This document shows positions 5,441 through 47,225 of a stretch of 64,000 nt of DNA, one piece after another. Within the stretch, counting starts at the first letter, position 1. Every line of letters starts with the position of its first letter. Source of the DNA: Salpingoeca rosetta (Eukaryota; Protista; Choanoflagellata); contig JAWQFM010000017.1 of the NCBI GenBank assembly GCA_033442325.1, forward strand, positions 1,105,125-1,169,124, in the 5' to 3' direction. A program made the position numbers and the translations under genes. A model generated the notes under the pieces. That model did not search any database, had not been told where the DNA came from, and saw nothing but the letters and a program-made list of their open reading frames with translations.

Positions 5441-8332
5441 ATGACCTCGACAGCTACAGGTACCAGCGCCATGTCTCAGCCCTCGGCAATAATCATCCTC
5501 ACCGCCGCCATGGAGCGCCAAGTACACACGCTTGCCGGCCACGTCGCGTGCGCGTTCCAAGCCATGGCCTTGAGCATTCCGCCAGAGGTCATCTTCAAGA
5601 TTGCGGAGCTTGCAGTTGTTGCCATCGCCACCCAACACCAACAGCAACAGCAGCAGCACCAGCAACCACAACAAATTGGAAGCACATCAGCGCACCTTCG
5701 CCACCACCGCAGCAATCACCACAGCAGCAGCCACAACAACAACAACAACCACTGCGCTCAGCCAGCACCTCACATCTTCAACGCCACTCAAGAAGACATT
5801 GTCGCCGATGCGCCCGCGTTCCTCGCAAGCATCTTCCGGGAAACAGTCTTCCTGCAGACGCACGAGCACATTGCGCCGTTCCTCCTCCCGCTCCTGCACC
5901 GGGCCCGCCTCATCCCACTGCCGTCGCCAGCCGATCTTCAACGGGGTGAACCGCGCCACGCCCCACAAGACCAGGAAGAGGTGGACGAAGAAGAAGCAAC
6001 AGCAACAGCAGCAGCAGAACGACAACAGGCAGGAGGCGCGCGAGAAGCAGGATCATCACATGGCTACCACCATCACCACCACCACCACCAAGAACAAGAT
6101 GGCAAGTCCCAAGAACATCCCTGCTGTGAGAGCTTTGGCAAAGCCATCGAGGGTGACGCACGCGCCGAGACGCACGACGACACCAGCTCGCACACGCGCT
6201 CATCATCCATCCACTCATCATCCATTCACTCATCATCCATCCACTCAAGCAAGAACACGGCTAGCCTCCGGCGATGGCAGAGGCGCAGGCGGCAGGAGAG
6301 AGCGAGCTTGCTGCAGGACTACGCGGTGCAACGTGTCGCGGCAATGCCGCAGCTCATGCCACTGCATGGATGCCACGAGGCCCGCAAGGCCGCGCTTTGT
6401 CGACCGCGGGGCCTGGCCCTTATGGCCGGCGTGCCGCTCCCCGGCCACGACGACATCAGCCAGGACAGCCGACGCATGCGCCGCCTCCAGAGCACATCTG
6501 GCAGGTTTGCTGGCAAGCGCAGCAGCGACGACGCAGGCCCTCACAAACATTACCACCGCAGCATCAGCAGCCCCGCCATGGCAGCACTGACGACACCAAT
6601 GCATGCCACCAACCACTCAACAGCAGCGCACAAGAAGGCTACGCCTGCGACCGACGCAAAGCACAAACATCCAACGCCAAGCCTCCCCTTGGCCAACACG
6701 CTGCTGTCGCCAGCCAAGATGACCCCGCCATCGACGCGAACACCGAGCCTGTCCCCTGCACCCCGCTCAGGCGACGGCGGCGGCGATGAGGATGACGAGG
6801 TGATGACGGCAGTGGGCTGCGTCATGTCGTGGTGGCGGGAGGATGTGGAGCAGACGCACGGTTTGCGCACCATCAGCCACCGCGAGCACGTGTGGGGCTG
6901 GTCGGGCGCCCTCACCCCGGCCGTGCGCAAGGAGAAGCGGGCCATCGCGCAGCAGTTGTGTTACCGCCTGTTTGGCTTTGCGCCCGGTGCAGTGCTGCCC
7001 TACCACGCAGAGACACCCGGCCTGAACGAGTTTCTCGCCTGCGTCGTCGCCATGGACATCCTGGGGCCCTGGCTTGACGAGGTGCACCTGCTGCACGTGT
7101 GTGCCTGCATCCGGGCATGCACCCCCTTCCTGCCCACCAACAACAGCACCCTCGCTGCCCTGTACGACACGTGCATGCGCATCTGCGTGGAGGACCTGCC
7201 CTTCCTCAGGCCGCTGCCGCTCGCCGTCCTGCAGCGCACCATCAAGCAGAAGGTGGAGAGCGCGTGCCGGCTGGCCACCAAGGTGGTGGGCCACTTTGCC
7301 GCCAAGGACACGCGCGTGTTCCTCGCCAACGCACACGCGCAGCTGCCATACCAGGGGGCCGCCCTGCGCGGGCCAGCCACGTGCACGCTTCTCCATGCAT
7401 GGCTGCGGGCGATGGCAGAGACCATCCACTTCTTCGACGCGCTGCTGGCAGAGCCAGACCACATCTTCCCGCGCTACGGCGACGTGCGCACGGACGACGA
7501 GCACCAGCGGCTGCAGGACAGCGCCGCGCGGAACCTGCGACGAGCACGCGTCTTTGTTGGCGCGCAGTTCATCACCGCAGCCATCATGCAGGCCGTGCTG
7601 GCGCTGACGGGGTTTGACATCGACACGGCCCCACTGCACGAGCTGTTGCCGCACGCGGCCGCCTCTGCTGCCCTCGCTTCATCTGGCCACAATAGCGATG
7701 CTGATGATGGTGTGGCGAGAGATGGTGACGCTGGCGAGGCGAAGGGTGGTCGTGATGCACGACTTGAGGGCCACCACAGCCCCAGCAGCAACAGTGGCAA
7801 CAACAGCAGCGGCAGTGGCAGCAGATTTGCCTTTGATGACGAGCGTGTTGCCGATCACACATATGCAGAGTGGCTTCTGCATGCCGGCTTTGCACTCAGC
7901 GAGAAGGCGGCGACGAAGAAGACGGCGACGAAGGAGAAGCGTGACGATGGACCTCAGCTCCAACAGCATGCACAGCAGCAGCAGCATGCACAGCAGCAGC
8001 AGCATGCACAGCAGCAGCAGCAGGGGGAGGAGGAGGAGGAAGAGGAGGAAGGCGCGCCTTCTGCGCAACGCGATTGCAGCGCTGCGTTCCGGCAGTTGTC
8101 CCTGGGGGTGCTTCACGCCCTGGGGGAGACAGAGGCTGGGGACAGCCGCAATGGCAGTGACGCACGCCGGTGCAGCACGAAGCTGGATACAACCAGGCAC
8201 GCAGTGTTTGAGCAGTGCTTGGACATGTGCTTCTCGTCTTCGCAGGGGCAGCTGGACATTCCCTCCTTTCTCGCACACATGCCAGATCCGGCCGTGGTCG
8301 TGGTGGCCAGCTTTGTTGACAGGTGCATGTGA
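5441..8332 (+). CDS. Intronless 963-aa protein resembling a bacterial (cyanobacterial-type) HD-like hypothetical family, with low-complexity insertions and a degenerate HD motif
   Basis: Long ORF with coding-like codon usage. Blocks PHIF..FLASIFRETVFLQ, LFGFAPGAVL..GLNEFLACVVA..L..CACIRACTPF, RLATKVVGHFA..FLANAHAQLP and IFPRYG..AARNLRRARVFVGAQF match, from memory, the order of the family motifs FHTPEHIF..AALFHDxVYxQ / FGFxPGQ..GxNEFLSA..IxACIEATIPF / RLANRDV..FLDNTWxLLPE / A.RNL..ARxYLxxK. Confidence 0.7.
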   Translation: MTSTATGTSAMSQPSAIIILTAAMERQVHTLAGHVACAFQAMALSIPPEVIFKIAELAVVAIATQHQQQQQQHQQPQQIGSTSAHLRHHRSNHHSSSHNNNNNHCAQPAPHIFNATQEDIVADAPAFLASIFRETVFLQTHEHIAPFLLPLLHRARLIPLPSPADLQRGEPRHAPQDQEEVDEEEATATAAAERQQAGGAREAGSSHGYHHHHHHHQEQDGKSQEHPCCESFGKAIEGDARAETHDDTSSHTRSSSIHSSSIHSSSIHSSKNTASLRRWQRRRRQERASLLQDYAVQRVAAMPQLMPLHGCHEARKAALCRPRGLALMAGVPLPGHDDISQDSRRMRRLQSTSGRFAGKRSSDDAGPHKHYHRSISSPAMAALTTPMHATNHSTAAHKKATPATDAKHKHPTPSLPLANTLLSPAKMTPPSTRTPSLSPAPRSGDGGGDEDDEVMTAVGCVMSWWREDVEQTHGLRTISHREHVWGWSGALTPAVRKEKRAIAQQLCYRLFGFAPGAVLPYHAETPGLNEFLACVVAMDILGPWLDEVHLLHVCACIRACTPFLPTNNSTLAALYDTCMRICVEDLPFLRPLPLAVLQRTIKQKVESACRLATKVVGHFAAKDTRVFLANAHAQLPYQGAALRGPATCTLLHAWLRAMAETIHFFDALLAEPDHIFPRYGDVRTDDEHQRLQDSAARNLRRARVFVGAQFITAAIMQAVLALTGFDIDTAPLHELLPHAAASAALASSGHNSDADDGVARDGDAGEAKGGRDARLEGHHSPSSNSGNNSSGSGSRFAFDDERVADHTYAEWLLHAGFALSEKAATKKTATKEKRDDGPQLQQHAQQQQHAQQQQHAQQQQQGEEEEEEEEGAPSAQRDCSAAFRQLSLGVLHALGETEAGDSRNGSDARRCSTKLDTTRHAVFEQCLDMCFSSSQGQLDIPSFLAHMPDPAVVVVASFVDRCM

Positions 8333-8692: not shown

Positions 8693-9961
8693 TCACGCGT
8701 TCCCTCTCGCGTCGTCATCATCTTGGTCGCTGTGCTCCTGTTGTGCACTGCCATCAGCTCCATCCTCATTCACCGACACATCCTCATCTGCCAACGCCTC
8801 CTGGTCGTCCCCACCATCACTATCATCGTCGTCGACAGCACCGTTTGCTACTGGCCACTCGCCACCACGCAGCAGGGCGTCCACACGTGCCGTGCGCTGG
8901 GGGCGCAGGTTTGCAATCGCAAACGCGTCCTGCGGGCGAGCAGAGAGCTGGGCCAGAAGTCCAGTGCGTGTGGTCCTGTCGCGGCGGTTGCGCTTGGGAA
9001 ACACCTTGCTGCCCCAGTGGTTTGTGACGCGGTTCGACGCAAACGCTGTCTCGAGGGTGTTCACGTGCTGCTCGTCCACGTCCTCCCTTGGACGGTGGCA
9101 GACATAGACGACACCGCGCCACTGCGACCAGGGGTCACTGCGATCGATGGGGGCGTGCTTGTCCTGGCCCTTGGCCGAGTGCACGAGGGAGGAGAGCCAG
9201 AGGATCATGCTGCCCTTTCTGGCGTGGACGCACGTCTGGTAGGCGCCACCGGTTGCGCGCACATACGCGGCGATGGCGCGACAACCGTCCTCGCGGAAGA
9301 GGTGGAAGTCGGAGACAGCGGAACGGCACCCGCCATCGAGGTCCAGGAGCTCTTGCAGGTAGTGGTGGGACGTTGGGGAGCAGCGGAAGGCGGCCGTCGT
9401 GTTGGTGAGCACGACTTGACCCTGGATGCACTTGAAGATGTTGTCTGTGTCGTGGGTTTGGTCGACGTGGGCCCAGTCCTTCTCCGGGTCGTGGAAAGGC
9501 GCGGTGGGCGGCTTGACGTTGATGCCGTCGCAGCTGGTGACGAAGCGGGTGATCTCGCGCCCGCGCAGGCCGCTGTAGGCATGCTGGAAGACGTTGTGCA
9601 CGCGGTCGTCGCTGCGGATGTCCCACACCACGGGGAACTGGGCCACCAGGCTGTGGTACATGCCCTGCCGCGGCCCTGCGGGGAGGTTTTCGCGGGTCCA
9701 GGTCTTTGGCTTTCGGGTGAGCGCCGGGGAGAGCGCGTGGAGCGAATCCGCAAGCTCATCCATGGCGGCGTTGCACTCCGCGTCCGTGAAGACATTCTCC
9801 ACCACCACGACGCCATGCGAGCGGATGTGGTCGGTCAGCCGCTGCCGCAGCTCTGGGCTGGCGTAGTCCACGCGAGGAATCACCTTCTCACACGCACACC
9901 CAATGGTGCTGTCAGAGCTGGCTGTGGCCGGTGCCTTGGCAGAGTCGGCTGTGGTCGTCAT
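8693..9961 (-). CDS. Phytanoyl-CoA dioxygenase (PhyH)-like 2OG-Fe(II) oxygenase, intronless
   Basis: 422-aa ORF with HGVVVVENVF, HxD iron ligands in WAHVDQT, CIQGQV, the distal His in GSMILWLSSLVHS, the 2OG-binding Arg in RGVVYVC, and NRVTNHW; acidic tail. Confidence 0.85.
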   Translation of the reverse strand: MTTTADSAKAPATASSDSTIGCACEKVIPRVDYASPELRQRLTDHIRSHGVVVVENVFTDAECNAAMDELADSLHALSPALTRKPKTWTRENLPAGPRQGMYHSLVAQFPVVWDIRSDDRVHNVFQHAYSGLRGREITRFVTSCDGINVKPPTAPFHDPEKDWAHVDQTHDTDNIFKCIQGQVVLTNTTAAFRCSPTSHHYLQELLDLDGGCRSAVSDFHLFREDGCRAIAAYVRATGGAYQTCVHARKGSMILWLSSLVHSAKGQDKHAPIDRSDPWSQWRGVVYVCHRPREDVDEQHVNTLETAFASNRVTNHWGSKVFPKRNRRDRTTRTGLLAQLSARPQDAFAIANLRPQRTARVDALLRGGEWPVANGAVDDDDSDGGDDQEALADEDVSVNEDGADGSAQQEHSDQDDDDARGNA

Positions 9962-10154: not shown

Positions 10155-10563
10155 CGCAGGTGAAGGAGAAGGACAGTGAACTAGTGAATGCTCTGTGGAT
10201 GTGCGTGATGGAATGAATGCCACACAACAAGGACACAGGAGCAAGCCACTGGAACGAGGAGAAGCTTTGATGACTCACTACGATGGCTGGCAGTGTACCC
10301 AGTCATGTGCTCATGTGCAATGTGAGGAGCGGAAGAAGAGACTAAGAGAAGACGCTCCCTCTCCGTCCGTGCTGTGTGTCACATCACACTTCTCTTGTCA
10401 CATGTCGCATCTTGGCTGTTGTGGTTTGTGTTGGAAGTGTCAATCCGCTGACTGATGTGTTACATGTGTGAATCAAAAATGGACGGTTTCCCCCATTTTG
10501 AGATTAAAAAGCCTGAAAGTGCCTCCCTTCCTCCTTCATGTCAACATCCAAAGACAGCACAGC

Positions 10564-13500
10564 ATGCCGCATCCTCAAGCACGCCCTCTTGAAGGCTTTC
10601 ATCATCGCTTCACCCTTGACTGGCGGATACACCAAAGAAGCCGGCCACAGCAACCACAGCAAGCTCAAGGGCCGCCGTTGAACACAACACCGACAGCAAC
10701 AACTGCTCGCTGTGACGCTACGCCTATCAGGACTCGCACTGACGACTGTCGCGCGGATAAGAACAATGGAGGTGCACTCAGACACGTCGAACAACTACCA
10801 ATCACAAGAAACAGCAGGACACCACAGCTCAATTGGCAGAGGCACCACCACCAAACAACAAGAACAACAAGAACAACAGAGACGACGTCTCCAGGCGAAC
10901 AGCTACGAAAACTCGTTCTTCGCATCCTCAACGGCACCGCACCTGGCATCATACAGCTCACTTGCTCGCGAACAACGACCGTCGACACACTGAGGCAGGA
11001 TATTGGCAACGCGTTCAGGCACGTGGATTGGCTGCACGGTTTCTCCTGTGATGTGGAGCAGAACCTACGTCTTGGAAGCCGTCATGTTTTCCTGGATGTT
11101 TCGAGCCGAGCCCTCGCTGAGGACGACGTGTACACGGTCGACCTCCACGTTCGGCCGCTTCCGCTCGGTCAAGTTGGCTTGGAGAACCCGCCCCTGTTTC
11201 GGAGCGGCTCCCACGGCGGGCACAGAGATCGGCAGGCCCTGCAGCGCTTGGCCAACTTGGAGTGGGCAGACGTCGACCCAGCACACCCAGAGCACAAGGA
11301 AATGAAGGCTGTGGCAGATGCACCTCACTGGGATGAGCAGGCGCTTGATGCAGGGGCGCGAGTCTCGTCGCAAGGACACGAGGGTGGCGTCTTTGGCCCG
11401 ATCGCAGCAACGGTACCTTCACACGAGCTGAACAACCTCGACTTCAAGTCCTGCTGCGGCAGCAGCTCCAGTGGATGGACGCTGTACGCCGACACCAGCA
11501 CCATTGCGAAATTGATGAAGGACACACTGCCTGCCTTGCTCAACTCCATCAACACAAATGGTTGTGCAGACGCCACGGCTCACCTTATTTGCGGTGTGGT
11601 CGACAATGACGACGACTGTCACGTGAGCGGGATTGTGCCTGAGGAGCCACTTGAATGTGATGCGTACTTCAAGGATGTGATTGACCAAATCAACACGCGA
11701 ATTCATCAGCAGCTCTTTCCTCCCCTGCCAACAGGCTCTGCAACACTGCACGTGCATCGTGTGGTCGATTGCTACACCGCGCTGGAGGACGGTGGCCTGG
11801 ACAAGAACGACGGCGAGTACAAGTTGGTGCTCTTTGGGCGTCGTGAACTCGACACGGCGGCATTCTTGCGTGGCAAGCTTCAGGGCAAAGGGGCATTGTT
11901 CATCAGTGGGAACGGAGAGAACCCTCAACACGCAGTTGTGTTCCACGCACAAGCGCAAACGCCCTCGCTGACATCCTCAGCATCATCAGCATCGACAACA
12001 GCGTCACCGACGTCCTCGGCGACACCAGCTTCATCAGCGCCATCATCAAGACAAGAGGTTGGAACGAGCGCCATGTCATTTTCGGCGCAACAGCTGCTGC
12101 AGTACCTGGAGGACCACGATTGGAAGCACGTGCCTCGGTTTGTGCTGCAGCTCGTTTTCAAGCCACCTCCTCATCTGATCGGCACATTCATCGACACCCA
12201 CGCCTTTGCGCCCGTGTATGTGGACAACGGTGAAGAGGCCAGCCTGTCTCGCATTGGGATGTGGGCCAGGCTCCACCCTCAGCCAAGCGTGTCCACCCAG
12301 TCGCTGATGGCAGGTAGCTGGTACGTCAAGCTATGCGTGGGCGCGGTCGCAGAGAGGTGGCTGATTGCCAAGGGGGTCAGTTTCCAAGCAGGCGTCTCTT
12401 CTCCGGCCGCACATGCCCACGAGCTCTCACGTGTGTTGCAGAGAGGCCAGCAGCCCTTCTTGTTGTTTATCGCGACAACTGATGTGGAAGCTGGTGCGCT
12501 TGACTCCATTGGGCTGTCTCAATCCGCAGCCCCCGTCCTGATTGTGTTGCTGGCAGAGCGGCTACTTACCCCGACCGAAACTTTTGCGACCCTGAAAGCC
12601 CTCCAGCCTGCATGCGCTTGCGCGAACGTGCACGTGATTGATCTGATCTCCATTTGCAGTCCCAGAGACAAGAACGATGTCAGCGGCATCAGCGCTGTGC
12701 CGCTAGCCACAGTCGCCAGCGATGACAACGAGGAAGCCGTGCACTTTACGTGGCTGCATCATGTCACCCCGGTCAAGCAGGCGACATCTTCTGCAACCAA
12801 CGAGGTTGCGGATGTGTCTCAAGAAGCGCAGCAGCAGCAGCAGCAAGAGCAACATGAGCAAGAACAGCAACATGTGCAGCAACTTGTGCAGACACAACAG
12901 CAAGAGCCACAACAGCGACAGCAACAGCAGCACGTGGACGGCGCCCACATCCCCGCCCTGGCTATGACTGCAGAAGACCGGCAAACTGCGTTCGTGGACT
13001 GGCTTGAGGGGAAGACGCCAATGCAGTGGGAGATTGCATATGACATCCCAGAAACCACGGGCATCCGCGAGCTTGAAGCAGAGGTGTTGGCATCACTTTC
13101 ACCAGGCCAGCTTGGGTGTGTGGTGGCTGATAAGGCTGAGGCTGGTGCCGGCGCAAGTACTGCTTTGAGGCGTGTTGCTGTCGTGCAGGCGGACCGAAAT
13201 GCATTGGTGTTCTGGGGCGGCGACGGCAGCAACGTACCCAAGCAGAAGCAACGTGCCCGTGCTGTGTGGTATTACATGGTTCGCCAGTACCGAGAGCCTC
13301 GCCCTGACGGCGCATCATGGAAGCACCTGTTGCTGGTGATTGACGCGCACCCGCGCTCGGCATTCACGCTGCTGCAGGCGGGGCGGGACGTTCTCGACAT
13401 GCACAGCAATCGTGACATACGTGCCTGCGTTGTGTTGGCGTCTGGCTGTCCAGCCTTTTCGTCCAAGCACTTCAAGCCTCCGGTTGGAGCACGCTTCGTG

Positions 13501-15075
13501 CCCATCCATGCATTTCTTCGTACAGAGGCGGACATTGACAATGTTCACCGCGCCCTGGTCAAGTTCTTGCCTGACCGACAGCCCCAGCTCGACGATGTGC
13601 GCTCCGAGGCCCACAGGAGTCTTGCATTCAGCGACGCACACCCCACCACACACGACAGCTACATGTGCAACCATATGTTTGTCTTCGCTCTAGCTGCCCT
13701 GCGTGGGGAGTTCATGCCGCCACGCAGGCTGGTGCGAACGGTCCTGGACAGCACTACCCCTGCAGAGAAGCGTGTTCTGATGGCTCTGGCGTTTATTCGC
13801 GCTTTCTGCCTTGCGGACACGCCGGTTCCCCTGTGCTATGTGAGCGGTGACGGGGCCTTGTCCGCGCGCTTGCAACGGCTTGTGTGCTTCGCCTCCCAAG
13901 ACAACGACCAAGTTCGGTTTTGCCACCCCTTCTACGCGCGGATCTTTGTGGAGGAGGCGGCCTCGTGCCAAGCGTCACCCGGGGGCACCGCTGTCATGTT
14001 GAGGCTGGGCGCCGAGAGCTTAACAAGGAGCGACCGAGCGCAGCTGTTGGGCATGTGGGCGGAAACAGTCCGGTTTCTACAGAAGCCACGCGAAGGCGTT
14101 GACGCTGGAACGCGACTCCTGCAACGTGTGGCGAATGAGGTCCTGCTTCAACGGCATGGTGACGAGTTTGCCCCGCTTGTGAAGCGCGTGCTGTTCCCTG
14201 CACAGCGCTGCGAGCGCTCTGGCGACCTTGAGGCTGAGCTTGACAGGCTGTTCAAACCTGTGCGACAGAACCAGCCCCGTGCATGGTTCGCAGAGTACGA
14301 CAATCATCTCTTCGGACACGAGTGCGTTGTCAGGGCGCGGGTGTTCCGAGAGTATGCACTGGCGGACGTTGACTGTCGACCAAAGGTGCACGACTGCATT
14401 GCTGAGGTCGCTGTGAAGTGGGCTGAGGAGGCATGCCAAGTGTTTCATTTTGACGGGAACAAGCGCCGTGATCTCAGAGCAAGCCAGGATCGTGTGGCTC
14501 GACACTTGCTTGCCACTTGCCATGCAGCATGGTGGCGTCGCTCGCATGCCACGTGCCGCACGAACCAGTGTTCCGAGCCTGGCACTGGCAAAGAGGGGCG
14601 CGGCGGCGATTTTCCTCATGGCTGCAATGATGACGATGATGACAACGACGATGGGGGTGATGAGGAGGGGGATCAAGCGTGGCAACCTCCGCCTCGGTAT
14701 GGCCCAAACACAGCACTTTCGCGTGGTACCACCCTTGCGGGGAGTGCTGGCGGTCGAGCCGGTGTGCCTCGATCTCGTTCCTTGGGGCACCTTGCCAGAC
14801 CCGATCCCCAACTCAGCGTTCGTCGCCAGCCTTCTCCTAGTCCTGCGCCGTGGTTTCCCCATTCCACAGCAACAGTGGCGTCATCAACACGCCGCAACGC
14901 AACTCGTGCCAGCGCGTTTACACCAACTTCTGCTGCCCGCGGCGCTCGGCCAAGTCCATCAGGTTCAGGTTCATATCATCAACGGAACAGCGACGACAGC
15001 CGGCGCTATGTTGACCAAAGATACCAGCGCCCTCGCCCATCGGCCTCAGCCACAGCACTGCAAGACCCGTGCTAG
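10564..15075 (+). CDS. Intronless SAMD9/SAMD9L-like STAND P-loop NTPase with AlbA_2 (Schlafen)-like nuclease domain and N-terminal ubiquitin-like region
   Basis: ORF open from 10468; first ATG at 10564. AlbA-like motifs: HE..LDFKS, LPALLNS..NG..HLICGVVD and RFVLQLVFKP (~11377-12170). STAND motifs: WLEGKTPMQW; Lys-less Walker A AEAGAGASTALRRVA (13135-13180); Walker B LLLVID (~13327); FVFALAAL..F..LVRTVL; VRFCHPFYA (~13912-13938); LLQRHGDEFAPLV (~14143-14181). Confidence 0.72.
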   Translation: MPHPQARPLEGFHHRFTLDWRIHQRSRPQQPQQAQGPPLNTTPTATTARCDATPIRTRTDDCRADKNNGGALRHVEQLPITRNSRTPQLNWQRHHHQTTRTTRTTETTSPGEQLRKLVLRILNGTAPGIIQLTCSRTTTVDTLRQDIGNAFRHVDWLHGFSCDVEQNLRLGSRHVFLDVSSRALAEDDVYTVDLHVRPLPLGQVGLENPPLFRSGSHGGHRDRQALQRLANLEWADVDPAHPEHKEMKAVADAPHWDEQALDAGARVSSQGHEGGVFGPIAATVPSHELNNLDFKSCCGSSSSGWTLYADTSTIAKLMKDTLPALLNSINTNGCADATAHLICGVVDNDDDCHVSGIVPEEPLECDAYFKDVIDQINTRIHQQLFPPLPTGSATLHVHRVVDCYTALEDGGLDKNDGEYKLVLFGRRELDTAAFLRGKLQGKGALFISGNGENPQHAVVFHAQAQTPSLTSSASSASTTASPTSSATPASSAPSSRQEVGTSAMSFSAQQLLQYLEDHDWKHVPRFVLQLVFKPPPHLIGTFIDTHAFAPVYVDNGEEASLSRIGMWARLHPQPSVSTQSLMAGSWYVKLCVGAVAERWLIAKGVSFQAGVSSPAAHAHELSRVLQRGQQPFLLFIATTDVEAGALDSIGLSQSAAPVLIVLLAERLLTPTETFATLKALQPACACANVHVIDLISICSPRDKNDVSGISAVPLATVASDDNEEAVHFTWLHHVTPVKQATSSATNEVADVSQEAQQQQQQEQHEQEQQHVQQLVQTQQQEPQQRQQQQHVDGAHIPALAMTAEDRQTAFVDWLEGKTPMQWEIAYDIPETTGIRELEAEVLASLSPGQLGCVVADKAEAGAGASTALRRVAVVQADRNALVFWGGDGSNVPKQKQRARAVWYYMVRQYREPRPDGASWKHLLLVIDAHPRSAFTLLQAGRDVLDMHSNRDIRACVVLASGCPAFSSKHFKPPVGARFVPIHAFLRTEADIDNVHRALVKFLPDRQPQLDDVRSEAHRSLAFSDAHPTTHDSYMCNHMFVFALAALRGEFMPPRRLVRTVLDSTTPAEKRVLMALAFIRAFCLADTPVPLCYVSGDGALSARLQRLVCFASQDNDQVRFCHPFYARIFVEEAASCQASPGGTAVMLRLGAESLTRSDRAQLLGMWAETVRFLQKPREGVDAGTRLLQRVANEVLLQRHGDEFAPLVKRVLFPAQRCERSGDLEAELDRLFKPVRQNQPRAWFAEYDNHLFGHECVVRARVFREYALADVDCRPKVHDCIAEVAVKWAEEACQVFHFDGNKRRDLRASQDRVARHLLATCHAAWWRRSHATCRTNQCSEPGTGKEGRGGDFPHGCNDDDDDNDDGGDEEGDQAWQPPPRYGPNTALSRGTTLAGSAGGRAGVPRSRSLGHLARPDPQLSVRRQPSPSPAPWFPHSTATVASSTRRNATRASAFTPTSAARGARPSPSGSGSYHQRNSDDSRRYVDQRYQRPRPSASATALQDPC

Positions 15076-15366
15076 AGGCGGTGAGGCTGGGCTGGTGGGT
15101 GGCTTCTTCTTGATTTTTCACTTGTGTGTGTGTGTGTGTGCGTGTGTGTGTGCGTGTGTGTGTGTGCGTGTGTGTGATTGCGTGAGGTGTGCGAAGGCGA
15201 GAGGCTGAGAGGAGAGGAGGGTATGAGGGGGGTTAGGTTGTGAGAGGGTGAGCGGAGGGACTGAGGGAGGCTGGGTGAGTTGTGGGCGTTGCTCTTGCTC
15301 GTCTGGCTGCTTGCTTCTTCCTTGTTGTGCGTTTGTGTGTTCTGTTGCTTCCATCTCCGTTTGCTT

Positions 15367-15723: not shown

Positions 15724-18368
15724 ATGTTCATCAGCGTGCGTTGTTGTGGTTGTTTGTTGTTGGTGGTTGTCGGTGTTGATGTTGGAACATGACCTGCTTG
15801 CTTGGACGTGAGTCGACAGAAGCGCGGCAGTGGAGGGCGTGGCGATTGAGCCTGTGGTCCATGTCGAGGCACTTGAATGATCCTCACTCTTTGTTGCTCG
15901 TGCCGTGCCTTGTGTGCCTTGTGTGGGTTGTGTTAACAGGAGATTATCATTGATGGGTTCAAGTCCTATGCCCAGCGCACGGTGGTGTCGGACTTTGATC
16001 CGTTCTTCAACGCCATCACCGGTCTGAATGGCAGTGGAAAGTCCAACATCCTCGATGCCATTTGCTTTGTCCTTGGCATCTCAAACCTCAGCCAGGTGCG
16101 ACCGCTTGAGCGTGTGCTTGTGCTTGTCGTTGCGTATCCTTGCGTGTGTGCTTGTCGTTGCGTATCGTTGCGTGCGTGTGTATGTGCGTGCTTGTCGTTG
16201 CGTATTGTGGCGTGCGTGTGTGCTTGTTGTGCGCGTGCTTGTCGTTGCATGTCCTCGTGCGCTTTATTGCCAGCGCTTGTTCTTTGCGATAGTTGGCTGT
16301 GCAACCAAAGCACAAGCGATGTGAGTGTGTTTGCAGCATCACTCAAGGTGTCGGTCGTTGGGCTGTTGTGTTTGTTGCAGGTGCGCGCAAGCACGCTGCA
16401 GGAGCTGATCTACAAGCAGGGCCAGGCCGGCGTGACCAAGGCCACTGTGTCGATTGTGTTCAACAACGAGGACAAGGACCAGAGCCCGATTGGCTACGAG
16501 CAGCACGACACCATCACTGTGACGCGGCAGATTGCCATTGGCGGAAAGAACAAGTACATGATCAACGGCCACAATGCGCAGCAGTCGCGTGTGGCAAACC
16601 TCTTTCAGTCCGTGCAGCTGAACGTCAACAACCCGCACTTTCTCATCATGCAAGGCCGTATCACCAAGGTGCTCAACATGAAGCCGCCCGAGATCCTGTC
16701 GATGATCGAGGAAGCAGCGGGCACGCGCATGTTCGAGAGCAAGAAGACCGCCGCCCTCAAGACCATGACCAAGAAGGACAAGAAGGTGCAGCAAATGTGT
16801 TTGCGTGCGTGTGTGTGTGTTTGCTTGTGCGGGACGAAAGTGACAGTGGGAAGGTGGGATGGGATGGGCGAATGCAACGCACAGCTGTGAACGTATGCCT
16901 GAGGGGAGGGTGTGTGTGTTGAGTTAAACGGCGACAAGTTATAGCGCACACCAGTGTCTCGCTTTGATAAGCGACACAGTCAACTCACGCCTCCTGCCCC
17001 TTCTCCACCACCGACAGGTGCAAGAGATCCAGACGCTGCTCGATGAAGACATCACGCCGACGCTAGAGAAGCTTCGCAAGGAGCGCACGTCGTACCTCGA
17101 GTTCCAGAAGACGAAGGTCAGCAAATCCTATTGGGCTGGAACTGGGGCTGCTGCTTCTGCTGGTGGTGATGGAGGAGGTGGAGGAGGTGGTGCAGTGCAA
17201 TGCAGTTGTTTCGCATGATGGTGTTTACGACTGTGATGTTGGTGTTTGTGGCGCTGGCTGGCCATGCAGTTGCAGAGGCGCTGTGTGTGTGTGCGCGTGT
17301 GTGTGTGCGTGGGTGGGTGTGTTTCCAATCGCTAGAATGTCTCTTCCCTCACACTGCTGCTCGTGTGCGTGAATCGGATACCAGGCGGAGATTGATCTGC
17401 TGACACGCTTCCTCGTCGCATGGTCGTACCAGCGCGCAGAGGTGTGTGCACGTGCGTTTGGGTGGTGCTGAAGTCGTGTCCTTGTGCACTGCATGCTTTG
17501 TTTTTTTGACGCGCCAAGCTGAAGGTTCAACTGAAGCGAAGCATGCACAGCGTGACATATGTGCCATCACACCCAACTCACAATCACAATCACACACGCA
17601 TACTCATAATCACAATCACAATCACAATCAAACACACCCTTTCCTTACCTTCCCCCAATAGCAAACGCTGTCTGCGTCGACAGATGCGCTGACGACGGCT
17701 GAGGAGCGGGTGAAGGAGCTGCGTACGCAGGTGCGCACGCTCGAGGGCGACCGCGACAACACCCAGCAAAACATCTCCCTGCAGCAGAAGCGCCGGGATG
17801 CGGTGCGTGCTCTCGCCACTGATATGTGTGTGTGTGTGTGAAGCTGTTGTAGATGAAGACGATGTTGAGAGTTTTGTTGAGTTTTGTTGAGTTTTGTGCT
17901 GCTTACGCTGTGCGAATGCACATGCACACACACACACACATTGCTCACACACCTCAACAAGTGGCGGTGCCCGCATGCGTGTATGTGTGTGTGTCTCTAG
18001 GAGATGAACTCTGCTCTGCGGACGATGGAGGAGCAGGTGGGCAACCTGTCCAAGGTGGTGGTCAAGGCCAAGGCCGAATATGACAACAAAGTCCACGCTA
18101 TTGAGGAGGAGGAGGCTGCACGCAAGGCGCACCTCGCCCAGATTGAGGAGGTTTGTTGCCGTGGTGGTGATGACGATGATGGCGATGATGGCGATTGAGG
18201 GGGGTGCTGACAGAGGTGATGGAGAAGGAGGAGGAGAGCGACGAGTACGTGTGTGTACGTGGGCATGTGCATACGTTTGGGTGTGGCCTGTCCGAGGTGC
18301 GGTCAACATGATATCGTGCTGCTTTGGCATGCATATTCGTCCCATAGTTCAGCACCTATTCGCGCTCC

Positions 18369-18427
<59 letters not shown>

Positions 18428-19566
18428 GAACTGCAGACGCAAAAAAGCCTTGAAGACAAGGCGGGAGAGATTGACGCTGCGCGCGCTGCTGTTGAATCTG
18501 GCCAGACTGCCCTGCAAGCAGCGCAGGACGGCGTGGCGGAGAGCGAGAAGCGCTGCATGGCTGCATCTGTCGGCGCCTCATCCGTATGTAATGGGGGGGG
18601 GGTGGAGGTGACTTGGGATGGTTTGTGGTTTGTGGTTTGTGGTTTGTGGTGCGGTGTGGGTGAGCACGTGCATGTTTTCGCGTGTTTGGGTGCTGTTGTG
18701 TGTGTTTGGTGCCCGAGGCTGTGGGTGGCGGCAAATCCTATGTAATTTGCTGTTTGTCATTGCTACTCACACGTCATGGTGTCTTGTGCAATTTCGATAC
18801 GCAGGACGGCACGAGTCTCACGTTTGCCGAGCAGATCAAGGAGCTGCAGAGCGTCATCTCAACCGCCTCCACGCAGGTCTGTCCAAGTCTGGAGATGTGT
18901 GTTGCTGTTTGTGCGCGTTTGTGCTTGTGTGTTTGTGCGTTTCTGTTTGTGTTGTGGTCGTTGTTGTTGTTCGTGTCTTTGTTCTTGCGCTCGCGATCCA
19001 TACGGAGGTGGTCGCCATCATACTATTCACATTCGTCCTGTGCTCGCCCCCTTTAATCCGCACTGTAGATGAAGCAAGCAGAGATGACCATCTCCCACGC
19101 CACGAGCGAACTCAAGACAAAGAAGCCAAACGGTGAGGCAATAAAGCATTGCGCACACGCCCTCGCTGACGAATGCCCGTCACTGCCACCGTTTTCTGAT
19201 GTTGCGGCTGTACATGCGCGCGAGTTTTCGCGTTTCACTGTGCTATTTCTTGTGCATGCATGTGTCAATGTGCACTGTCTTGCACTGCGCCATCCCACAC
19301 TGACGCCTGTGTGTCGCTTGACGCCACAGCCAAGAAGAGCGAGTCGGAGTACAAACGGCTCCAGCGCGACGTGAACGCCCTGGAAACCGATCTCAAGGCC
19401 ATCGAGGTGCGTTGCGTGCGCATGCCTGTGTTTGTGGACGTATGCGCATGCGCTTGGCCTATGTACCTTGGATTGAATGCACATATAGGTTCATTCTTTT
19501 TCCACTGCTTCATGCGTCACTTTGCTCACACACTCTCCTCGCGATCTGCGACTGCACATTCCACTC

Positions 19567-19603
<37 letters not shown>

Positions 19604-22600
19604 CACGCACTCACGCGCACACACACACACACACACACACACGCTCACGCACTCACACACACACACGCACTCCCTGTCTGCGCAGGAGCATGTGGCAAAG
19701 CTTGCCTTTGATGAAGGCGAGGAAGCGAAGCTGCACGAGCAGAAGCAGGCGCTCGACCGGGAGTATCTCGCTGCAAAGGACCAGGTGGACACGCTGTCCG
19801 CTAGGCTGTCCCGCCTCACCTTTGAGTACAAGGACCCCGAGCCTGGCTTTGACCGCTCACAGGTACGCTGACCTACATTGTGTTTGCATGTACATGTGTG
19901 TGTGTACGTGCGCGTGAGTGCGAATACAGCCGTGCGTGGAACGTGTTGCACTTTCGATGACCCAGCTCATTTCTATCGCTTTGTCTAATGCATGATACTT
20001 ACTTTCACGACAACTCCATATTCCACCATCACCACCGCGGTTACCACCATCACGGCTATCGTCATCGTTTGACCACGAAATACCACGCCGTCAGGTGCAC
20101 GGTCTGGTGGCTGAGCTGATCGACGTTGCCGATGCGAGCACGGGCACGGCGCTTGAGATCACGGCGGGCGGCAAGCTGTACAACGTGGTGGTGAAAGACG
20201 AAGTGGTTGGCAAGAAGCTGCTGAGCAAAGGCCAGCTCAAGCGCCGTGTTACCATCATTCCCCTCAACAAGATTGCGGCCAGGTCTCTCAAGGACGATGT
20301 TGTTCGCCGCGCAAAGCAGGAGGTGGGTGTTTGTGTGTGTTTGTGTGTGCGTGTGTGTTTGTGTGACAGTGAGTTTTTGAGTGAGTGATTGAGTGAGTGA
20401 GTGAGTGTATGTACGCATGTGTGCGCGTGTCAGTGTGAACACACATGTTTGTGTGTGTGTGTGAGTGCAAGTGTACGTTCACCGACTCATGCATCTCCGT
20501 CCACTCTCCCCTAAACGCCAACAATCATGGTGTGCAGGTTGGTGAGGAGAATGTTGACGTTGCGCTGAGCCTGATTGGGTACCCTGCTGAAGTTGCTGCT
20601 GCCATGGAATACGTCTTTGGCCGCACGCTGGTCTGCAGGACCCTCGACATGGCAAAGAAGGTGGGCGCAAATGCTCGCGCGTGTCTTGTGTGTCTTGTGT
20701 GTCTTGTTGTGTGTGTGTGTGTCTTGTGTGTGTGAGGTTGGTGTGTGTGTGTGTGTCTTGTGTGTGTGTGTGTCTTGTTGTGTGTGTGTGTGTGTCTTGT
20801 TGTGTGTGTGTGTGTCTTGTTTTGTGTGTGTGTGTGTGTGCGCGCATGAGAGCAGGTTGTGGAGTTTTTTCATGCAACATGTGTGTCATCGCATCACAAA
20901 CCTCACCCCACTCCCTCTGCTTCACGACTTGTGTGTTTTGGCGGATTGTGTATGTGTTTTGTTCTCGTCCCCTTCCTGACTGACACCAGGTCACGTTCCA
21001 CGACAAGATCCGTGCGCGGACGGTGACGCTTGACGGCGACGTGTTTGACCCGAGCGGCACTCTCACGGGCGGCGCCAAGGCCTCGTCCTCTGGCGTCCTC
21101 CTCGCCCTGCAGGTAAAGCACATGGGCACATGCTGGTGGCGTGATGTTGTAGTGCTGGTGTGGCGTGCTATTGTTCTGTGAAGGACAAAGTCATTGGAGT
21201 TTCTTGCGAGTTTACTGCACACCTGACAAGCCAGCATGCACACGCATGTGCAATCACGTGTGTTCATGTTCACGCACACTCTCACTCATACACGCACACA
21301 CACACGCACGCACACACATACACACACACTCATACACATTCACGCACACATACACACGCATAAATGTGCAGTCCTTGAGCAAGGCGCGGCGCCACCTGAC
21401 GCGGGTGGAGACGGAGCTCTCGCGGGTGAACAAAGCGCTGGCGGCTGCGAGCGACGCAGCTGCACGCTACCAGCGGCTCATCAGCAACCGCGACATGAAA
21501 GCGAGCGAGCTGGAGGTGCTGCGGGTCAAGCTCGACTCCAACGTGCACTACAAGGTGAGCAAACTGATGGCGGTGGTGGAGACCGTGGTGGTCGAAATGG
21601 TCGTGGTGATGATGAGATGGGTGGGCGTGTTTGCTTGACGCGGTGTCTTTGAGTAAGCATTGGTACCACCACAGTTGTCTCGCTGACACGCTGTCACACA
21701 AACAAATGCATGTGCGGTTCAGGCCGTGTCTGAGGTCAAGGAGTTGGAGGAGACGATTGCATCGTCGAAGGAGCAGCTGACGGCGAGCAAGAAGCAGAAG
21801 CAGGACGCAGAGAAGAAGATCAAGCAGCTTGAGAAGGAGCAGGCGTCCTACGCCGACAAGGTAGTGCAGCAGCACTCGTGGTGATCATTGTTGGCGGCTG
21901 GTATTGGTAGTTTGTGTGCTTGTCGTTCTGTTGCAGACCAACGAAAGGCTTTGCATTGGGCGCTTCAATGCGTACACTTATGCACACACACACACATACA
22001 CATACACACACATGCATACGGCAGCGCGACGAGCAAATGCGCAAGGCAGAGGAGATGCGCGCTGCGGCGAAGGAAGCGCTGAAGGCGGCCAAGGCAGAGG
22101 TGCAGCGGCTGCAGCAGGCGCACGAGGAGCAGGTGCTGGAGCGCGACGCCCTCGCCGGTGAGCTGAAGACCATGCAGAGGCAGACGGACAAGTTTGCAGA
22201 GACGCTTGAGAAGCTTGCGCAGGAGAAGGAAACGCTCGCTGCGACGCTGGCGTCCAAGAAGCGCGACTTTGAACAGGCAGATGACCAGTGAGTATTGAGT
22301 TGGCAGGCGGTGTGTGTGTGTGTGATGTGGTTGTTTGCTTGCGTGCACTTGTTTGCTTGTGCATGTTTGCCTCGCTTTGGCCATACGCACACACACACAA
22401 TATGACATGCTGTTCTCACCTCTCGTGCAAACACGTCAGGCTGACGCGCAAGAAGGAGAAGTTGACGGCTGTAGATGCGAAGCTGCGAGAGCTGAAGACT
22501 CATCTGAAGGAAGTGCAGGCGGAGCTCGACGCAAACGCGCTTGAGCTGAAGAAGCTCTCCCACGACAAGGACAAGCTGGCACGCGAGAAGAAGGAGGCAG

Positions 22601-24053
22601 CTGCCACGGTGCGTGCATGCATTTTCCTTGTAGATGAACGCATGTTTAATTGTTATTTGCAGCGTGTGTTGGTATCCTCCGTGGCAGGGGATACCCTGCC
22701 AGCTCTGCTTTACGGTCACCGCCTCACACCGTCCACTCCTCAACAAAACTGCATGTGTATTGTTGACGCAGGTAATGGCGCTGGTTCGCCAGCACGAGTG
22801 GATTGAGAGCGAGAAGCAGTACTTTGGGCAGAAGGACACCGCGTTTGAGTTTCGGGAGGGTGATCCCAACCGCGACCCATCGCTGTGCAAGAAGCGGCTG
22901 GCGCAGCTGCAGGCGTCCCAGGACAAGCTGTCGAAGAACGTGAACATGAAGGTCATGGCCATGTTTGACAAGGCTGAGAAGGAGTACAACGACCTCATCA
23001 AGAAGAAGCAGATTGTCGAGCAGGACAAGTCAAAGGTGCGCGCACGTGTGTATGTGTACGTGTGTGTAGGTGTGTGTGGTTGTGTATGTGTATGTGTGTG
23101 TGTGTGTGGTTGTGTAGGTGTATGTGTATGTGCGTGTGTAGGTGTGTAGGTGTATGTGTATGTGTATGTGTAGGGGTTTGTGCGTGCGTATGTGTATGTG
23201 CGTGTGTGTGTGTTTGTGCGTGCGTATGTATGTGTGCGTGTAGGTGTGTTTGCACAACGCATGAGTGTTTGAGCTTGCAGAATTGTATCAACACCACAAT
23301 GGACTGCACTCTCACGCTTACTCTTTCCCTCACACCATCACACTCATACCCCCCTTCCCCCGCAATGCACATTGGTCAGATTGAGCAAGCGATTGAGGAG
23401 CTTGACCAGAAGAAGAACGAGGCACTGCGCAAGGCGTATGTGCAGGTCAACGACCGCTTTGGGTCCATCTTCTCCACCCTGCTGCCGGGCACGCAGGCGA
23501 AGCTCGTGCCTGCAGAGGGCGGGGATGTGCTGAGCGGCCTGGAGGTGAAGGTCGCCTTTGGCCAGGTCTGGAAGGAGTCTCTCACCGAACTCAGCGGCGG
23601 CCAGCGGTACGCGTCTTTGTTGTTGGTGGTGTTGCTGTTGGTCATGGTGTTGGTGGCTGGTGTTGGCGATGGTGTAAGTGTTGTTGGTGTTGTTGACATT
23701 GCTGTCTGCTGTGCGGCGGAGACGGCCAGTCTTCGTCGCGTCTGTTTCACTGCACACACATGTCGTGCTTGCTTCTTTTCCCTTTCCCATGCACACGCAC
23801 GCTCACACACACACACGCACGCTCACTCACGCACGCGTTTGCCCTGTTATTCCCCACCTCCACTTGATACAATTCTCCAGGTCTCTTGTTGCGCTGTCGC
23901 TGATTCTGTCGCTGCTGCTGTTCAAGCCCGCGCCGCTGTACATTCTGGACGAGGTCGACGCTGCACTCGATCTCTCCCACACCCAGGTGCCGTGGGGACG
24001 TGGTTTTGTGTGCTTTGTGTGTTTTATATGTGTATGTGTGTGTGTGCATATGT

Positions 24054-24127
<74 letters not shown>

Positions 24128-24534
24128 CATGTGGAGGGAATAGTGCTTGCGAGCTATAGTTGCTCGACCCCGAGACCGACCTTCTGCCGCGCTCTCATCT
24201 TCGCTCACGGAACATTTCTTCTTCTGTTTGCCTCGCCCTCGCCATCCTCGTCACCATCGTTTAGAACATTGGCCAAATGCTGCGCATGCACTTTAAGAAG
24301 TCGCAGTTTGTCGTTGTGTCGCTCAAGGACGGCATGTTCAACAACGCCAACGTGCTCTTCAAGACCAAGTTCATCGACGGCGTCTCGACCGTGCGCAGGT
24401 GTGTACGTGTGTGTGCGCTTTTGTGCTTTTGTGCTTGCATGTACGCGTTCATGCATGTGCATGTGTGTGTGTGTGTGTACATGTGGCTGTGAGCATTCTT
24501 GGTGTCCGAAGCCATGTGCAATAGACAATTTGAT

Positions 24535-24602
<68 letters not shown>

Positions 24603-24729
24603 CAGGTTTGCTCAAGCACCGTCTGCGACCGAGAAGGAGAACTCAAGCGGCCGTAAGGCGGCCAACACGTCCAAGAAGCCCAAGCGCGCAGCTAAGGTGC
24701 CCGCAGCCCTCGCGGCCCAGCGCTCCTGA
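15724..24729 (+). CDS. SMC2: Structural maintenance of chromosomes protein 2 (condensin), 24 exons
   Basis: [15 protein letters not shown], Walker [35 protein letters not shown], hinge [36 protein letters not shown], signature LSGGQR, Walker [16 protein letters not shown] exons: 15724-15735, 15940-16095, 16381-16785, 17018-17116, 17385-17441, 17662-17802, 18001-18150, 18437-18583, 18805-18876, 19069-19132, 19330-19406, 19686-19862, 20095-20322, 20538-20660, 20990-21112, 21372-21554, 21723-21860, 22025-22287, 22440-22608, 22772-23035, 23380-23606, 23881-23986, 24265-24398, 24606-24729. Confidence 0.97.
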
Positions 24730-38868: not shown

Positions 38869-41800
38869 TCACACACGCATAACGCACACCTTCTCTCCCT
38901 CTCTCCCCTCCCCCTCCAGGTTGGCAAAGGTCGCATGCCCGTGTACTTGCGGTGCGTGGGAACACAGACGGGAACAGAGGTGGTGCTCAAGAACACATGG
39001 AACGGGATCAGCACGATCAACGAGGAAGAGTCCCTGCTTGTTGTCGAGAACCACATTGCATGCGACCCAGATCGTGAGTTGTTCACGCAGTATGTGCTGC
39101 AAACCAACTTGAAACACACCTTGAAACACGGCCTGCTGCCCGCCCTTCTGTGATTCTTGCCCCTGCTCCACCGTTTGTCCCACACACACATACACACACA
39201 CACACATTGCTTGTCTTGCTCCTCTTTCTCATCACCCCCCACCCAACAAACACACACATGCACACATTACATCACCCAACACAACACCACCGCCAACAGC
39301 TGACCGCGTCGTGTTCTCGTTGAGCGCGAGCGCAACAAGCGTTGTGGAGGAAGATACACCCTCCATCACCTTCAACGTCAGCAGAACAGGGCCCACCGAC
39401 GATGACGTGAGCGTTCGCCTGGCCGCCGTTGATTTCCAGGCCTCGCGCAACGCGGACTACACGCGCGCATCCGCCTCCCGGCTCATCACGTTCGCTGCGG
39501 GCCAGACTTGGGCGCAGGAAACCATCCCCATCCTGGACGATGCCTTTCCGGAGCTTGCAGAGTCGTTTGCGCTTGCCCTGACGCAACCGACCTTGTTGAC
39601 AGGCTCTGGCCGCGAGGTTGTGCTTGAGGATGGTGCTGCCGTCGTCCTCATCACCATCCAGCCATCCGATGACCCGCACGGTGTCATTGCTCTCCGCAAC
39701 CCCAACACCACCATCGCCCTGACTGAGCCCCTCTCTGGTGCCACCACCATCACCATCCCGCTCGTGCGCACGGGCGGGACCTTTGGCTCCGTCACTGTGG
39801 ACTGGATCATTGACGGCGATGCACAGACCCACGACTTTGACGCGCTGCAAGGGTCTGTCACCTTTGGGTCTGCGGAGGCCGCCGCCAACATCACCCTGCA
39901 ACTGCGCGCCGACAACCAGCCTGAGCTGCTGGAACAAAGCGTGTTCCGGCTGCTCACCGCGAGCAACGGCGCGACCGTTGACGCCGCAAGCGCAGCCCTC
40001 ACCCTCACGGTTGACCCAAACGACGACCCACACGGCGTCGTCTACGTGCAGGCAAGCGAGCAGCAGCTCATCATGCACCACACTGGTCAACGCGCGCTGC
40101 GCATCCTTGCCCAGCGGTCTGCGGGCACGCAAGGCGCTGTCAACGTCACGTTCTCCGTCACCTTTGGCACGAGCAACATCATCAGCAACAACCTCGCCTG
40201 TCTGCAGCAGTTTATCATCGCCGACAGTGTCACCATCGCCATCTCACATGGCGCCGCCAGTGCAGAGGCAGTTCTTCCCTTCAGCGACACCGTGTTGCTG
40301 GAGCAAGGCGCCGGGTTTTGCCTGCAGGCAACGGCAGTCGCACTGGCAGATGGCTCCCCTGTCCTCGTGGCGTCGGATTCTTTGTCGCCTCGCCTCAACA
40401 CATCGCGTGTCGACGCCCGCGTGGTTGTCGCGCGTGCGTTTGCCAACGGCGTGGTTGGCTTTGCCGGCACAAGCATCAACCAGGCAGAGCCCGCCACCCA
40501 GCAGCAGGACATCACCATCCTGCTTGTGCGCTCTGGCGGTGGTTATGGTACACTTGACGTGCAGCTTTCTCTCACTGGGAATTCAGAGTACGCCGTGCCT
40601 GGCCAGGACGTGACCCTGTCATCTAACGTCTCCCACTTTGATGCTGGCGACTCCCTCCACGAGCTCACCGTCTCCGTGCACCCCGACAACATCCCTGAGC
40701 TTGCCGAACAGTTCTTCGTCACCGTGGCGGACATTCCGTCCGGCCGCGCCGCCATCGACTCGGACTCCTCTGTTCTCACCGTCACTGTCCCGGTGCGCTG
40801 AGATGATGACATGGGTTGTTTTTGGAAGTGAAATGGATGTCTCGTGCTCCAATAATTTCCATACACACACACACACACCCAATTTGCATGCATCCGCTTG
40901 CACACAAACGCACACACACACACTCACATGCACACACACACGTATACATACACACTCTCACAAATGCACATGCACACACATACACACTCACATAAACACA
41001 TGCACACACTGTACTGCACTGCAGAAAAATGACGACGCAAATGGCGTGCTTGGGTTTGAGGTGACGGGCTACCGTGTGTCGGAGACGGACCCGAGCGGAC
41101 ATGTGGTGCTCAACGTGACAAGGACACGCGGGGCGTTCCAGTCTGTGAGCGTGGCGTTTGCCACGAGCGACGGCACGGCGGTGGCCGGGACCAACTACGA
41201 GGCGCAGAGCGGGACGCTTGTGTTTGGGGAAGGGGAGCGGAGCAAGGAGATTGCGGTTGGGGTGCTGGATGCGGGGGCACCGCGGGCGCCTGTGCGAACG
41301 CTGACGGTGACGCTGGGACAAGTGATTGGCGGGGCGCGGGTGGCGGCCGCATCTGCCACAGCCACCGTCAACATTCAGTCCTGCCACCACTGCAGCTTCA
41401 ACATCATCGACTCGCCGTCCCCGCTCGTGACAGCGGAGCCAGCAGGCACCAACACGGCCGACGTGACGGAGGTGGCTATCCCTGTGCGGCGAACCCCAGA
41501 CACCTTTGGGCCCGCCACGCTCCACTGGACGGTGTTTGAGAATGACCCTGCCACTGGCGACATCACTGCCGTGCAGGCGAGCATGGACTTTGTTGACGCC
41601 ACTGGCGCGGTGTCCTTCGTGCATGGCCAGCAGGATGCCGTGGTTGTGCTGCACATTCGCAACGACAACGAGCCTGAATTGACAGAGCGCTTCAGCCTGG
41701 TGCTCGTCTCAGTGGACGGTGATCCATCGCTTGGAATCAACGCAACCCTGCCCATCGACATTGTTGCCAACGACCTGTGCTTTGGCAGCTTCTCGTTCTC

Positions 41801-47194: not shown

Positions 47195-47225
<31 letters not shown>

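Follow-up and report, generated by a model that had tools for sequence, protein, structure and literature searches.

SAMD9 and SAMD9L are major human antiviral and disease genes, and the animal proteins are built from an AlbA_2 tRNase, a SIR2-like domain, a STAND P-loop module, TPR repeats as well as an OB fold. Within this family the Walker A sequence GK[TS] is replaced by GG[TS], a change for which a conserved upstream His may compensate (Mekhedov et al., 2017), whilst in a preprint describing SAMD9L by cryo-electron microscopy (cryo-EM) the nucleoside triphosphate is bound and unhydrolysed, ATPase and GTPase activity is undetectable, and a His occupies the place of the Lys. An evolutionary study from 2025 described an AlbA_2 site of three to four acidic residues that is required for SAMD9/9L and Schlafen activity. 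The origin of SAMD9/9L is debated between vertical descent, bacterial transfer and convergence, and a kingdom-wide survey, also from 2025, reported no significant SAMD9/9L matches in plants, fungi, algae or protozoa. Here we describe a gene of the choanoflagellate Salpingoeca rosetta, found in a 64,000-nucleotide stretch of contig JAWQFM010000017.1 (positions 1,105,125 to 1,169,124, assembly GCA_033442325.1; hereafter the window), that encodes a member of a SAMD9-like STAND family with a putative Schlafen-type effector. The protein is not a SAMD9 orthologue, and we do not file it as one because both sequence similarity and the OB fold fail. On balance we lean towards a cytoplasmic multi-domain switch protein of the STAND class, whose plan is that of animal SAMD9/9L and of bacterial Avs9. 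In the literature searched we found no paper that connects choanoflagellates with SAMD9 or with STAND proteins of the Schlafen type.

The C-terminal half of the protein (amino acids (aa) 795-1340) was modelled with AlphaFold2 from a nine-sequence alignment and no templates, giving a mean predicted local distance difference test score (pLDDT) of 61.8 and a predicted template modelling score (pTM) of 0.55. The model opens with a lead-in helix and five beta-alpha units, in which strand 1 is followed by the P-loop and strand 3 by an invariant Asp, and continues with a helical domain, a winged-helix-like beta hairpin plus helix, and approximately 195 residues of helical repeats. When it was compared with the PDB using Foldseek, ranks 1-6 were all cryo-EM structures of human SAMD9 (9zjv, 9zjz, 9zjr, chains A and B of 9zjs, and 9zjw; E 5.1e-10 to 4.3e-8), followed by the SIR2-STAND protein EfAvs5 (E 3.1e-6), Dark, ORC/Cdc6, NOD2, Apaf-1, Avs4, CED-4 and Avs3, so that the best SAMD9 E-value leads those of Avs5, Dark, NOD2 and Apaf-1 by about 10^4. 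In all there were 155 matches at E<=0.001, the best 50 of which are STAND and AAA+-type ATPases. The match does not reflect template copying, the model being template-free and the release of the SAMD9 structures dating from 2026; the structure predictor itself was trained before 2026. The original prediction, made from the DNA sequence alone, had called a STAND P-loop module and proposed the AlphaFold and Foldseek comparison as its check, which it came through. In STAND NTPases as understood by Leipe et al. (2004), a P-loop nucleotide-binding domain (NBD) bearing a Walker B Asp is succeeded by a helical domain and then by a winged helix that carries a conserved His, the whole being joined to an effector and repeats. 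The model has this topology, D927 lies after a hydrophobic strand, and H1037, P1052 and H1121 are invariant, H1121 being the probable equivalent of the MHD-type histidine of STAND proteins. As modelled, the C-terminal half belongs to the P-loop modules of the STAND type.

The gene is real, single-copy and conserved, and it is transcribed in a sister species. It lies in a stop-free frame on the + strand (10468-15075), and the public S. rosetta annotation (contig GL832972.1, GCA_000188695.1) has an identical product in one uninterrupted range. The intronless open reading frame (ORF) of about 1500 aa that had been proposed is therefore annotated as such (1503 aa), every quoted motif is present in the order given, and the unicellular-holozoan type of genome that had been surmised is that of a choanoflagellate. 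tblastn of the relatives described below against the whole window gave matches in frame 1 alone (10903-14544), which leaves no paralogue and no hidden exon in the window. The GC content of the gene is close to that of its surroundings and does not stand out. Three artefacts were considered. A chance ORF is ruled out by the length of the frame and by collinear homologues. Bacterial contamination or recent horizontal gene transfer is unsupported, given a 1.39-Mb S. rosetta scaffold, eukaryotic neighbours, unremarkable GC content and zero bacterial matches in the HMMER scan described below. A hidden frameshift or downstream exon encoding the conserved C-terminus was likewise rejected, as the ORF in the alternative frame (14450-15208) is dissimilar to the relatives and tblastn found frame 1 only.

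With aa 150-1300 as the query, 1.84 billion representative proteins were scanned exhaustively with HMMER, which returned five proteins at E<=0.001, the window protein itself among them and no bacterial or animal protein. P0002, from the choanoflagellate Microstomoeca roanoka (EukProt), is a complete transcript-derived ORF of 1306 aa and a full-length, collinear orthologue (E 7.8e-59). P0003, 598 aa long and encoded on a read-assembly contig of 2 kb, covers the NTPase part only, and P0004 (sharing its cluster with P0006) and P0005 (likewise with P0007-P0009) come from JGI metagenomes and Logan assemblies. Between aa 114 and about 1327 the full-length relatives match the window protein collinearly, with 19-30% of residues identical, both in pairwise BLAST and in the nine-sequence alignment. 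The genes of the metagenomic relatives (samples JGI 3300073881 and 3300045922, SRR30649436 and ERR4592245) lack introns and lie on compact contigs (L002, 3307-6720; L003, 1603-4794; L004, 21-3335), where they are adjoined by genes of eukaryote type (VWA plus alpha-kinase, MMtag, Methyltransf_16, and a MoaC extended at its N-terminus); a protist origin is probable for them. Judged by sequence, the window protein founds a small and very divergent eukaryotic family. Beyond the M. roanoka orthologue four further clusters were recovered, and metagenomes or read assemblies account for at least three lineages. Pfam, NCBIfam and PADLOC gave no family above threshold for the window protein, and the absence of any Pfam domain above threshold means that the family escapes routine annotation. 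Word-indexed protein searches with the window protein, with alignment A1 and with alignment A2 minus its low-complexity member returned the query alone, low-complexity words having probably crowded the candidates, and pattern scans of metagenomes with alignments A5 and A7 gave zero confirmed relatives.

A second line of evidence comes from the P-loop. The Walker A of the window protein reads G861-A-G863-A864-S-T, with Ala where Lys is canonical, and across the family it takes the form G-[AG]-[ST]-[ST] (GGSS in the P0005 lineage), the canonical Lys being absent in every member. An invariant residue, Lys857, lies six positions upstream, where strand 1 ends. The Lys-less Walker A that had been predicted thus holds for the whole family and is a trait of the SAMD9 family, present here, to go by the alignment, in a variant form with an upstream Lys and not a His. 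This shared, derived-looking feature does not depend on the Foldseek result and leads in the same direction. Pfam nSTAND_NTPase5 (PF25199) is the best and sole STAND-type Pfam match over the P-loop region, and it is found in three family members (19.6 bits in the window protein, 26.4 in P0003 and 13.5 in P0002), in each case below the gathering threshold of 34 bits. Further along, in the presumed sensor arm, F1202 and L1205 of the F-[SA]-P-L motif are invariant across the family.

For the AlbA_2/Schlafen nuclease of the original prediction there are two sub-threshold matches and a set of conserved acidic residues, which together are suggestive. Pfam SLFN_AlbA_2 (PF04326) is the sole match, up to E 10, of the P0009 fragment (E 0.07; 14.1 bits against a gathering threshold of 25.3 bits). 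Searched against the PDB, a profile of the whole family found SLFN11 (7fex_A) as its best match (E 0.098), and a profile of the AlbA-like region again put 7fex_A at the top (E 0.025), the runner-up standing at E 1.7. In the PDB search with the whole-family profile, rows of E ~0.7 to 1.5 (ATP synthase OSCP, Acb1 and a subunit of a viral polymerase) were treated as noise. All three AlbA-like alignments run across L-x-[VL]-G-[VI]-x-D...[VI]-x-G and the helix after it. The motif E288-x4-[DE]293-[FY]-[KR] is kept in all four full-length lineages and D349 of G[VI]..D is invariant, so that positions 288, 293 and 349 are E, [DE] and D throughout these lineages. The E-x4-[DE] spacing is that of E14 and D19 in the AlbA_2 active site of Avs9, and E288, D293 and D349 would match the known nuclease site. 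In the low-confidence model of the N-terminal half, aa 284-402 are predicted as a helix, two short strands, a helix and a strand, preceded by the unmodelled E-x4-D-F-K, an order which we take to be compatible with the AlbA_2 core. The region aa 284-445 is a likely candidate for an AlbA_2 domain. The S/T-rich insertion that had been placed within the AlbA region does exist (aa 454-510), as a variable linker following the AlbA-like core and not inside it. Scanning the fragments against NCBIfam and PADLOC brought no meaningful match, the PADLOC Avs models were matched neither by the whole protein nor by the AlbA-like fragments or the STAND half, and plasmids searched by tblastn with the AlbA-like fragment of a relative gave chance matches only, in transporter genes.

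Taken as a STAND-class switch, by analogy with SAMD9/9L and Avs proteins, the protein would consist, in order, of an N-terminal domain, a putative RNase of the Schlafen/AlbA_2 type, an alpha/beta region, the NBD-helical-winged-helix core and a short sensor arm, with disordered linkers between them. The Lys-less P-loop, aided by Lys857, may bind nucleotide without hydrolysing it and so keep the protein closed. A ligand derived from a pathogen or from stress would then engage the helical arm as the trigger, opening and oligomerising the STAND core such that the N-terminal nuclease domains are freed or assembled. The nuclease would cut RNA, most likely tRNA or another RNA of translation, by means of E288, D293 and D349, and this cleavage would stop translation in the affected cell. 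We infer the AlbA_2 fold, the nuclease activity and its substrate, the trigger or ligand, the oligomerisation and the immune role. A further step, which we regard as possible but take only tentatively, is that the protein is a pre-metazoan relative of SAMD9/9L, meaning that a STAND protein with an AlbA_2 effector and a Lys-less P-loop was present in the common ancestor of choanoflagellates and animals, perhaps with a wider spread in protists. If so, animal SAMD9/9L would have been inherited vertically and later gained the SAM/Death and OB domains, as opposed to being acquired from bacteria or newly assembled in animals. Choanoflagellates being the sister group of animals, a SAMD9-like STAND protein found there, with relatives in other uncultured eukaryotes, fills the protist gap and could serve as an outgroup for rooting the animal family, and the same approach may expose further hidden STAND proteins of immune type in protists.

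Several results weigh against the reading of a SAMD9-like switch with a nuclease effector, and they are best taken together with the explanations that they favour. The first of these is rather unlikely in our view, and holds that the resemblance is convergent, a protist STAND family having independently joined a Schlafen-type domain to a STAND core to give a protein that works like SAMD9 with no exclusive shared ancestry. At the sequence level the likeness to SAMD9 that had been drawn from comparison motifs fails: neither the PDB scan nor the scan of 1.84 billion proteins gave significant similarity, SAMD9 being absent from the phmmer and hmmsearch matches though its chains are included in the PDB sequence set, and no significant match to SAMD9, Avs or any AlbA_2 protein came from phmmer, hmmsearch or the family libraries. 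Convergence would also account for the differences in domain content. SIR2 is not demonstrable in aa 511-733, which have no Pfam or PDB sequence match and gave Foldseek matches at chance level on a low-confidence model. No SAM, Death or CARD domain was found, the family having a domain of its own of about 100 residues (aa 111-208) instead, which has zero Pfam matches and is the best-modelled part of the poor N-terminal model (pLDDT 52-58). Of the shortened C-terminal TPR/OB sensor replaced by low complexity that had been predicted, the short arm (about 195 aa as modelled, much shorter than in SAMD9) and the low-complexity end stood, whilst the TPR part gained no Pfam family match; no OB fold was found, the sequence after aa 1335 being of low complexity and without a Pfam match, and in the alignment the C-termini of the relatives fall at the end of the arm, which for the window protein is modelled as helical. 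The structural match, moreover, derives from a model of moderate confidence built on nine sequences, and Avs5 superposes better than SAMD9 by template modelling score (TM-score; 0.38 against 0.31), so that 'closest to SAMD9' refers to the local 3Di+AA score of Foldseek only. TM-scores are low throughout, as is expected where domain orientations differ. A published analysis, finally, holds Avs9 and SAMD9/9L to be convergent and found no protozoan homologue. Against convergence, the six SAMD9 entries outrank all other STAND proteins by about 10^4 in E-value, the rare combination of a Lys-less Walker A and an upstream basic residue is common to both families, and, the host coming from the animals' sister group, the simplest history is one of vertical inheritance.

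A second explanation, which we consider distinctly improbable, is a generic STAND scaffold lacking a nuclease. Its N-terminal half would not be AlbA_2, its conserved E/D motifs would be structural, and it would act as a platform for signalling or assembly, possibly outside immunity. The AlbA_2 matches fall under every curated threshold (14.1 against 25.3 bits; E 0.025), both signals depend on one stretch of about 50 residues, and Pfam gave no AlbA_2 match for the window protein, for its own fragment or for the P0006 fragment. The N-terminal model likewise failed (pLDDT 35) and is unusable as a structure for either the effector or a SIR2-like fold; its Foldseek matches were Rossmann-like and at chance level, and were used neither for nor against AlbA_2 or SIR2. 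This scaffold does not readily explain why two independent libraries give the same fold, through the same motif, as their only or top match, nor why four lineages with an overall identity of only 19-27% all retain E-x4-[DE]-[FY]-K and G[VI]..D..G, and the predicted strand-helix-hairpin-helix-strand order fits the AlbA_2 core.

The remaining explanation is a decaying copy, that is, that the S. rosetta gene is a relic losing its function, and we think this very unlikely: the Walker B is D927-A928 where the relatives have hhhhD-[DE], the tail at aa 1336-1503 is unrelated to their C-termini and there are four low-complexity stretches (aa 36-110, 454-510 (S/T-rich), 734-800 (Q-rich) and 1337-1503), but the 4.5-kb frame is open with no stop or frameshift, all family-invariant residues are kept, and the undetectable hydrolysis of SAMD9L implies that a lost catalytic acid need not disable the switch. 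The Asp-Ala Walker B and low-complexity C-terminus could nevertheless reflect relaxed function in the S. rosetta copy. For the favoured STAND switch, the Asp-Ala Walker B together with the Lys-less Walker A predicts nucleotide binding without hydrolysis in S. rosetta. The features of the gene and its product are collected in Table 1.

Table 1. Layout of the S. rosetta STAND gene and of the protein it encodes; nucleotide positions are those of the window.
Feature	Window position	Strand	Residues (aa)	Remarks
Whole gene, intronless	10564..15075	+		1503 codons plus stop; first ATG 10564; product 1503 aa
N-terminal tail, Q/T/P-rich low complexity	10564..10893	+	1-110	Not kept in relatives
Conserved N-terminal domain	10894..11187	+	111-208	Ends in h-P-[LV]-P-x-G-x-[VL]; at the SAM/Death adaptor position of animal SAMD9 proteins
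Putative Schlafen/AlbA_2-like nuclease domain	11413..11898	+	284-445	E288-x4-D293-F-K; L-x-x-G344-V..D349..G356; FPPLP 385-389
S/T/A-rich low-complexity linker	11923..12093	+	454-510	Variable in relatives
Middle region, strand/helix alternation predicted	12094..12762	+	511-733	At the position of the SIR2-like domain of SAMD9; R525, W567 and R569 conserved; aa 617-706 variable or absent in relatives
Q-rich low-complexity linker	12763..12963	+	734-800	
W-x2-G-x5-W lead-in helix and P-loop NBD	12976..13518	+	805-985	From model, Foldseek and conservation
Walker B, LLLVI-D927-A928	13342-13347 (Asp-Ala)	+	927-928	
Helical domain after NBD	13519..13818	+	986-1085	Invariant H1037 and F-x-P-P1052
Winged-helix-like element (beta hairpin plus helix)	13819..13983	+	1086-1140	Invariant F-x-H1121-x3-A1125
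Short helical-repeat arm, presumed sensor	13984..14568	+	1141-1335	F-[SA]-P-L at aa 1202-1205
Low-complexity tail, acidic then S/P/R-rich	14569..15072	+	1336-1503	In place of the ~60-100 C-terminal residues of relatives
Motif HELNNLDFK			287-295	
Motif LICGVVDNDDD			341-351	
Motif WLEG..MQW			812-822	
Motif AGAGAST			860-866	
Motif LLLVID			922-927	
Motif RFCHPFYA			1118-1125	
Motif LLQR..FAPLV			1194-1206	

The flanking genes are ordinary eukaryotic genes and the context is unlike a defence island. The divergent upstream neighbour (8693-9961, - strand) encodes a 422-aa PhyH-type dioxygenase (23.5 bits against a threshold of 22), which also has a weak sub-threshold match (E 0.0048) to the Gig2-like family, so called after a gene that viruses induce in fish. 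Beyond it, and thus second in line upstream of the STAND gene, lies an intronless annotated orphan gene (5441-8332, + strand) for a 963-aa protein with no Pfam family, and further upstream (<=4770, - strand) a gene encodes a 3162-aa protein with Ephrin_rec_like, TNFR_c6, PAN_1 and Kre9 domains. Downstream is a spliced gene of the SMC family (~15724-24729, + strand). A giant intronless gene of adhesion/receptor type occupies 40638-60326 (+ strand), an uninterrupted ORF of 6562 codons encoding about 10 Calx-beta and about 8 cadherin domains together with EGF and REJ domains. The STAND gene, its two upstream neighbours and this 6562-aa gene are each a single uninterrupted ORF, and the adjacent SMC gene is spliced. 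A further ORF (60543-63620, + strand) encodes a 1025-aa protein in which aa ~518-806 form a long TPR_12/TPR_10 array and the C-terminus carries a PH domain, its first 500 residues being without a Pfam match even at E 1.

Compared with known systems, the choanoflagellate protein shares with Schlafen proteins SLFN11/13 the motif and helix that align to SLFN11 and to positions 33-84 of PF04326, although here the region is fused to a STAND core and not to a helicase, and the second Schlafen lobe is not demonstrated. With the bacterial Avs9, Avs5 and Avs3/4 proteins it has in common the logic of effector, STAND module and sensor, Avs5 and Avs4 being among the top structural matches, whereas its host and its relatives are eukaryotic. 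It differs from animal SAMD9/9L in the upstream basic residue of the P-loop (Lys in the choanoflagellate family, His in SAMD9), in a Walker A that is mostly GA[ST] where SAMD9 has GG[ST], and in its dimensions, the choanoflagellate family measuring 1060-1500 aa with long low-complexity linkers and SAMD9 approximately 1590 aa. With these same animal proteins it shares the order of its domains, from a domain at the adaptor position through a putative Schlafen/AlbA-type region, a middle region and a STAND NBD to a helical arm.

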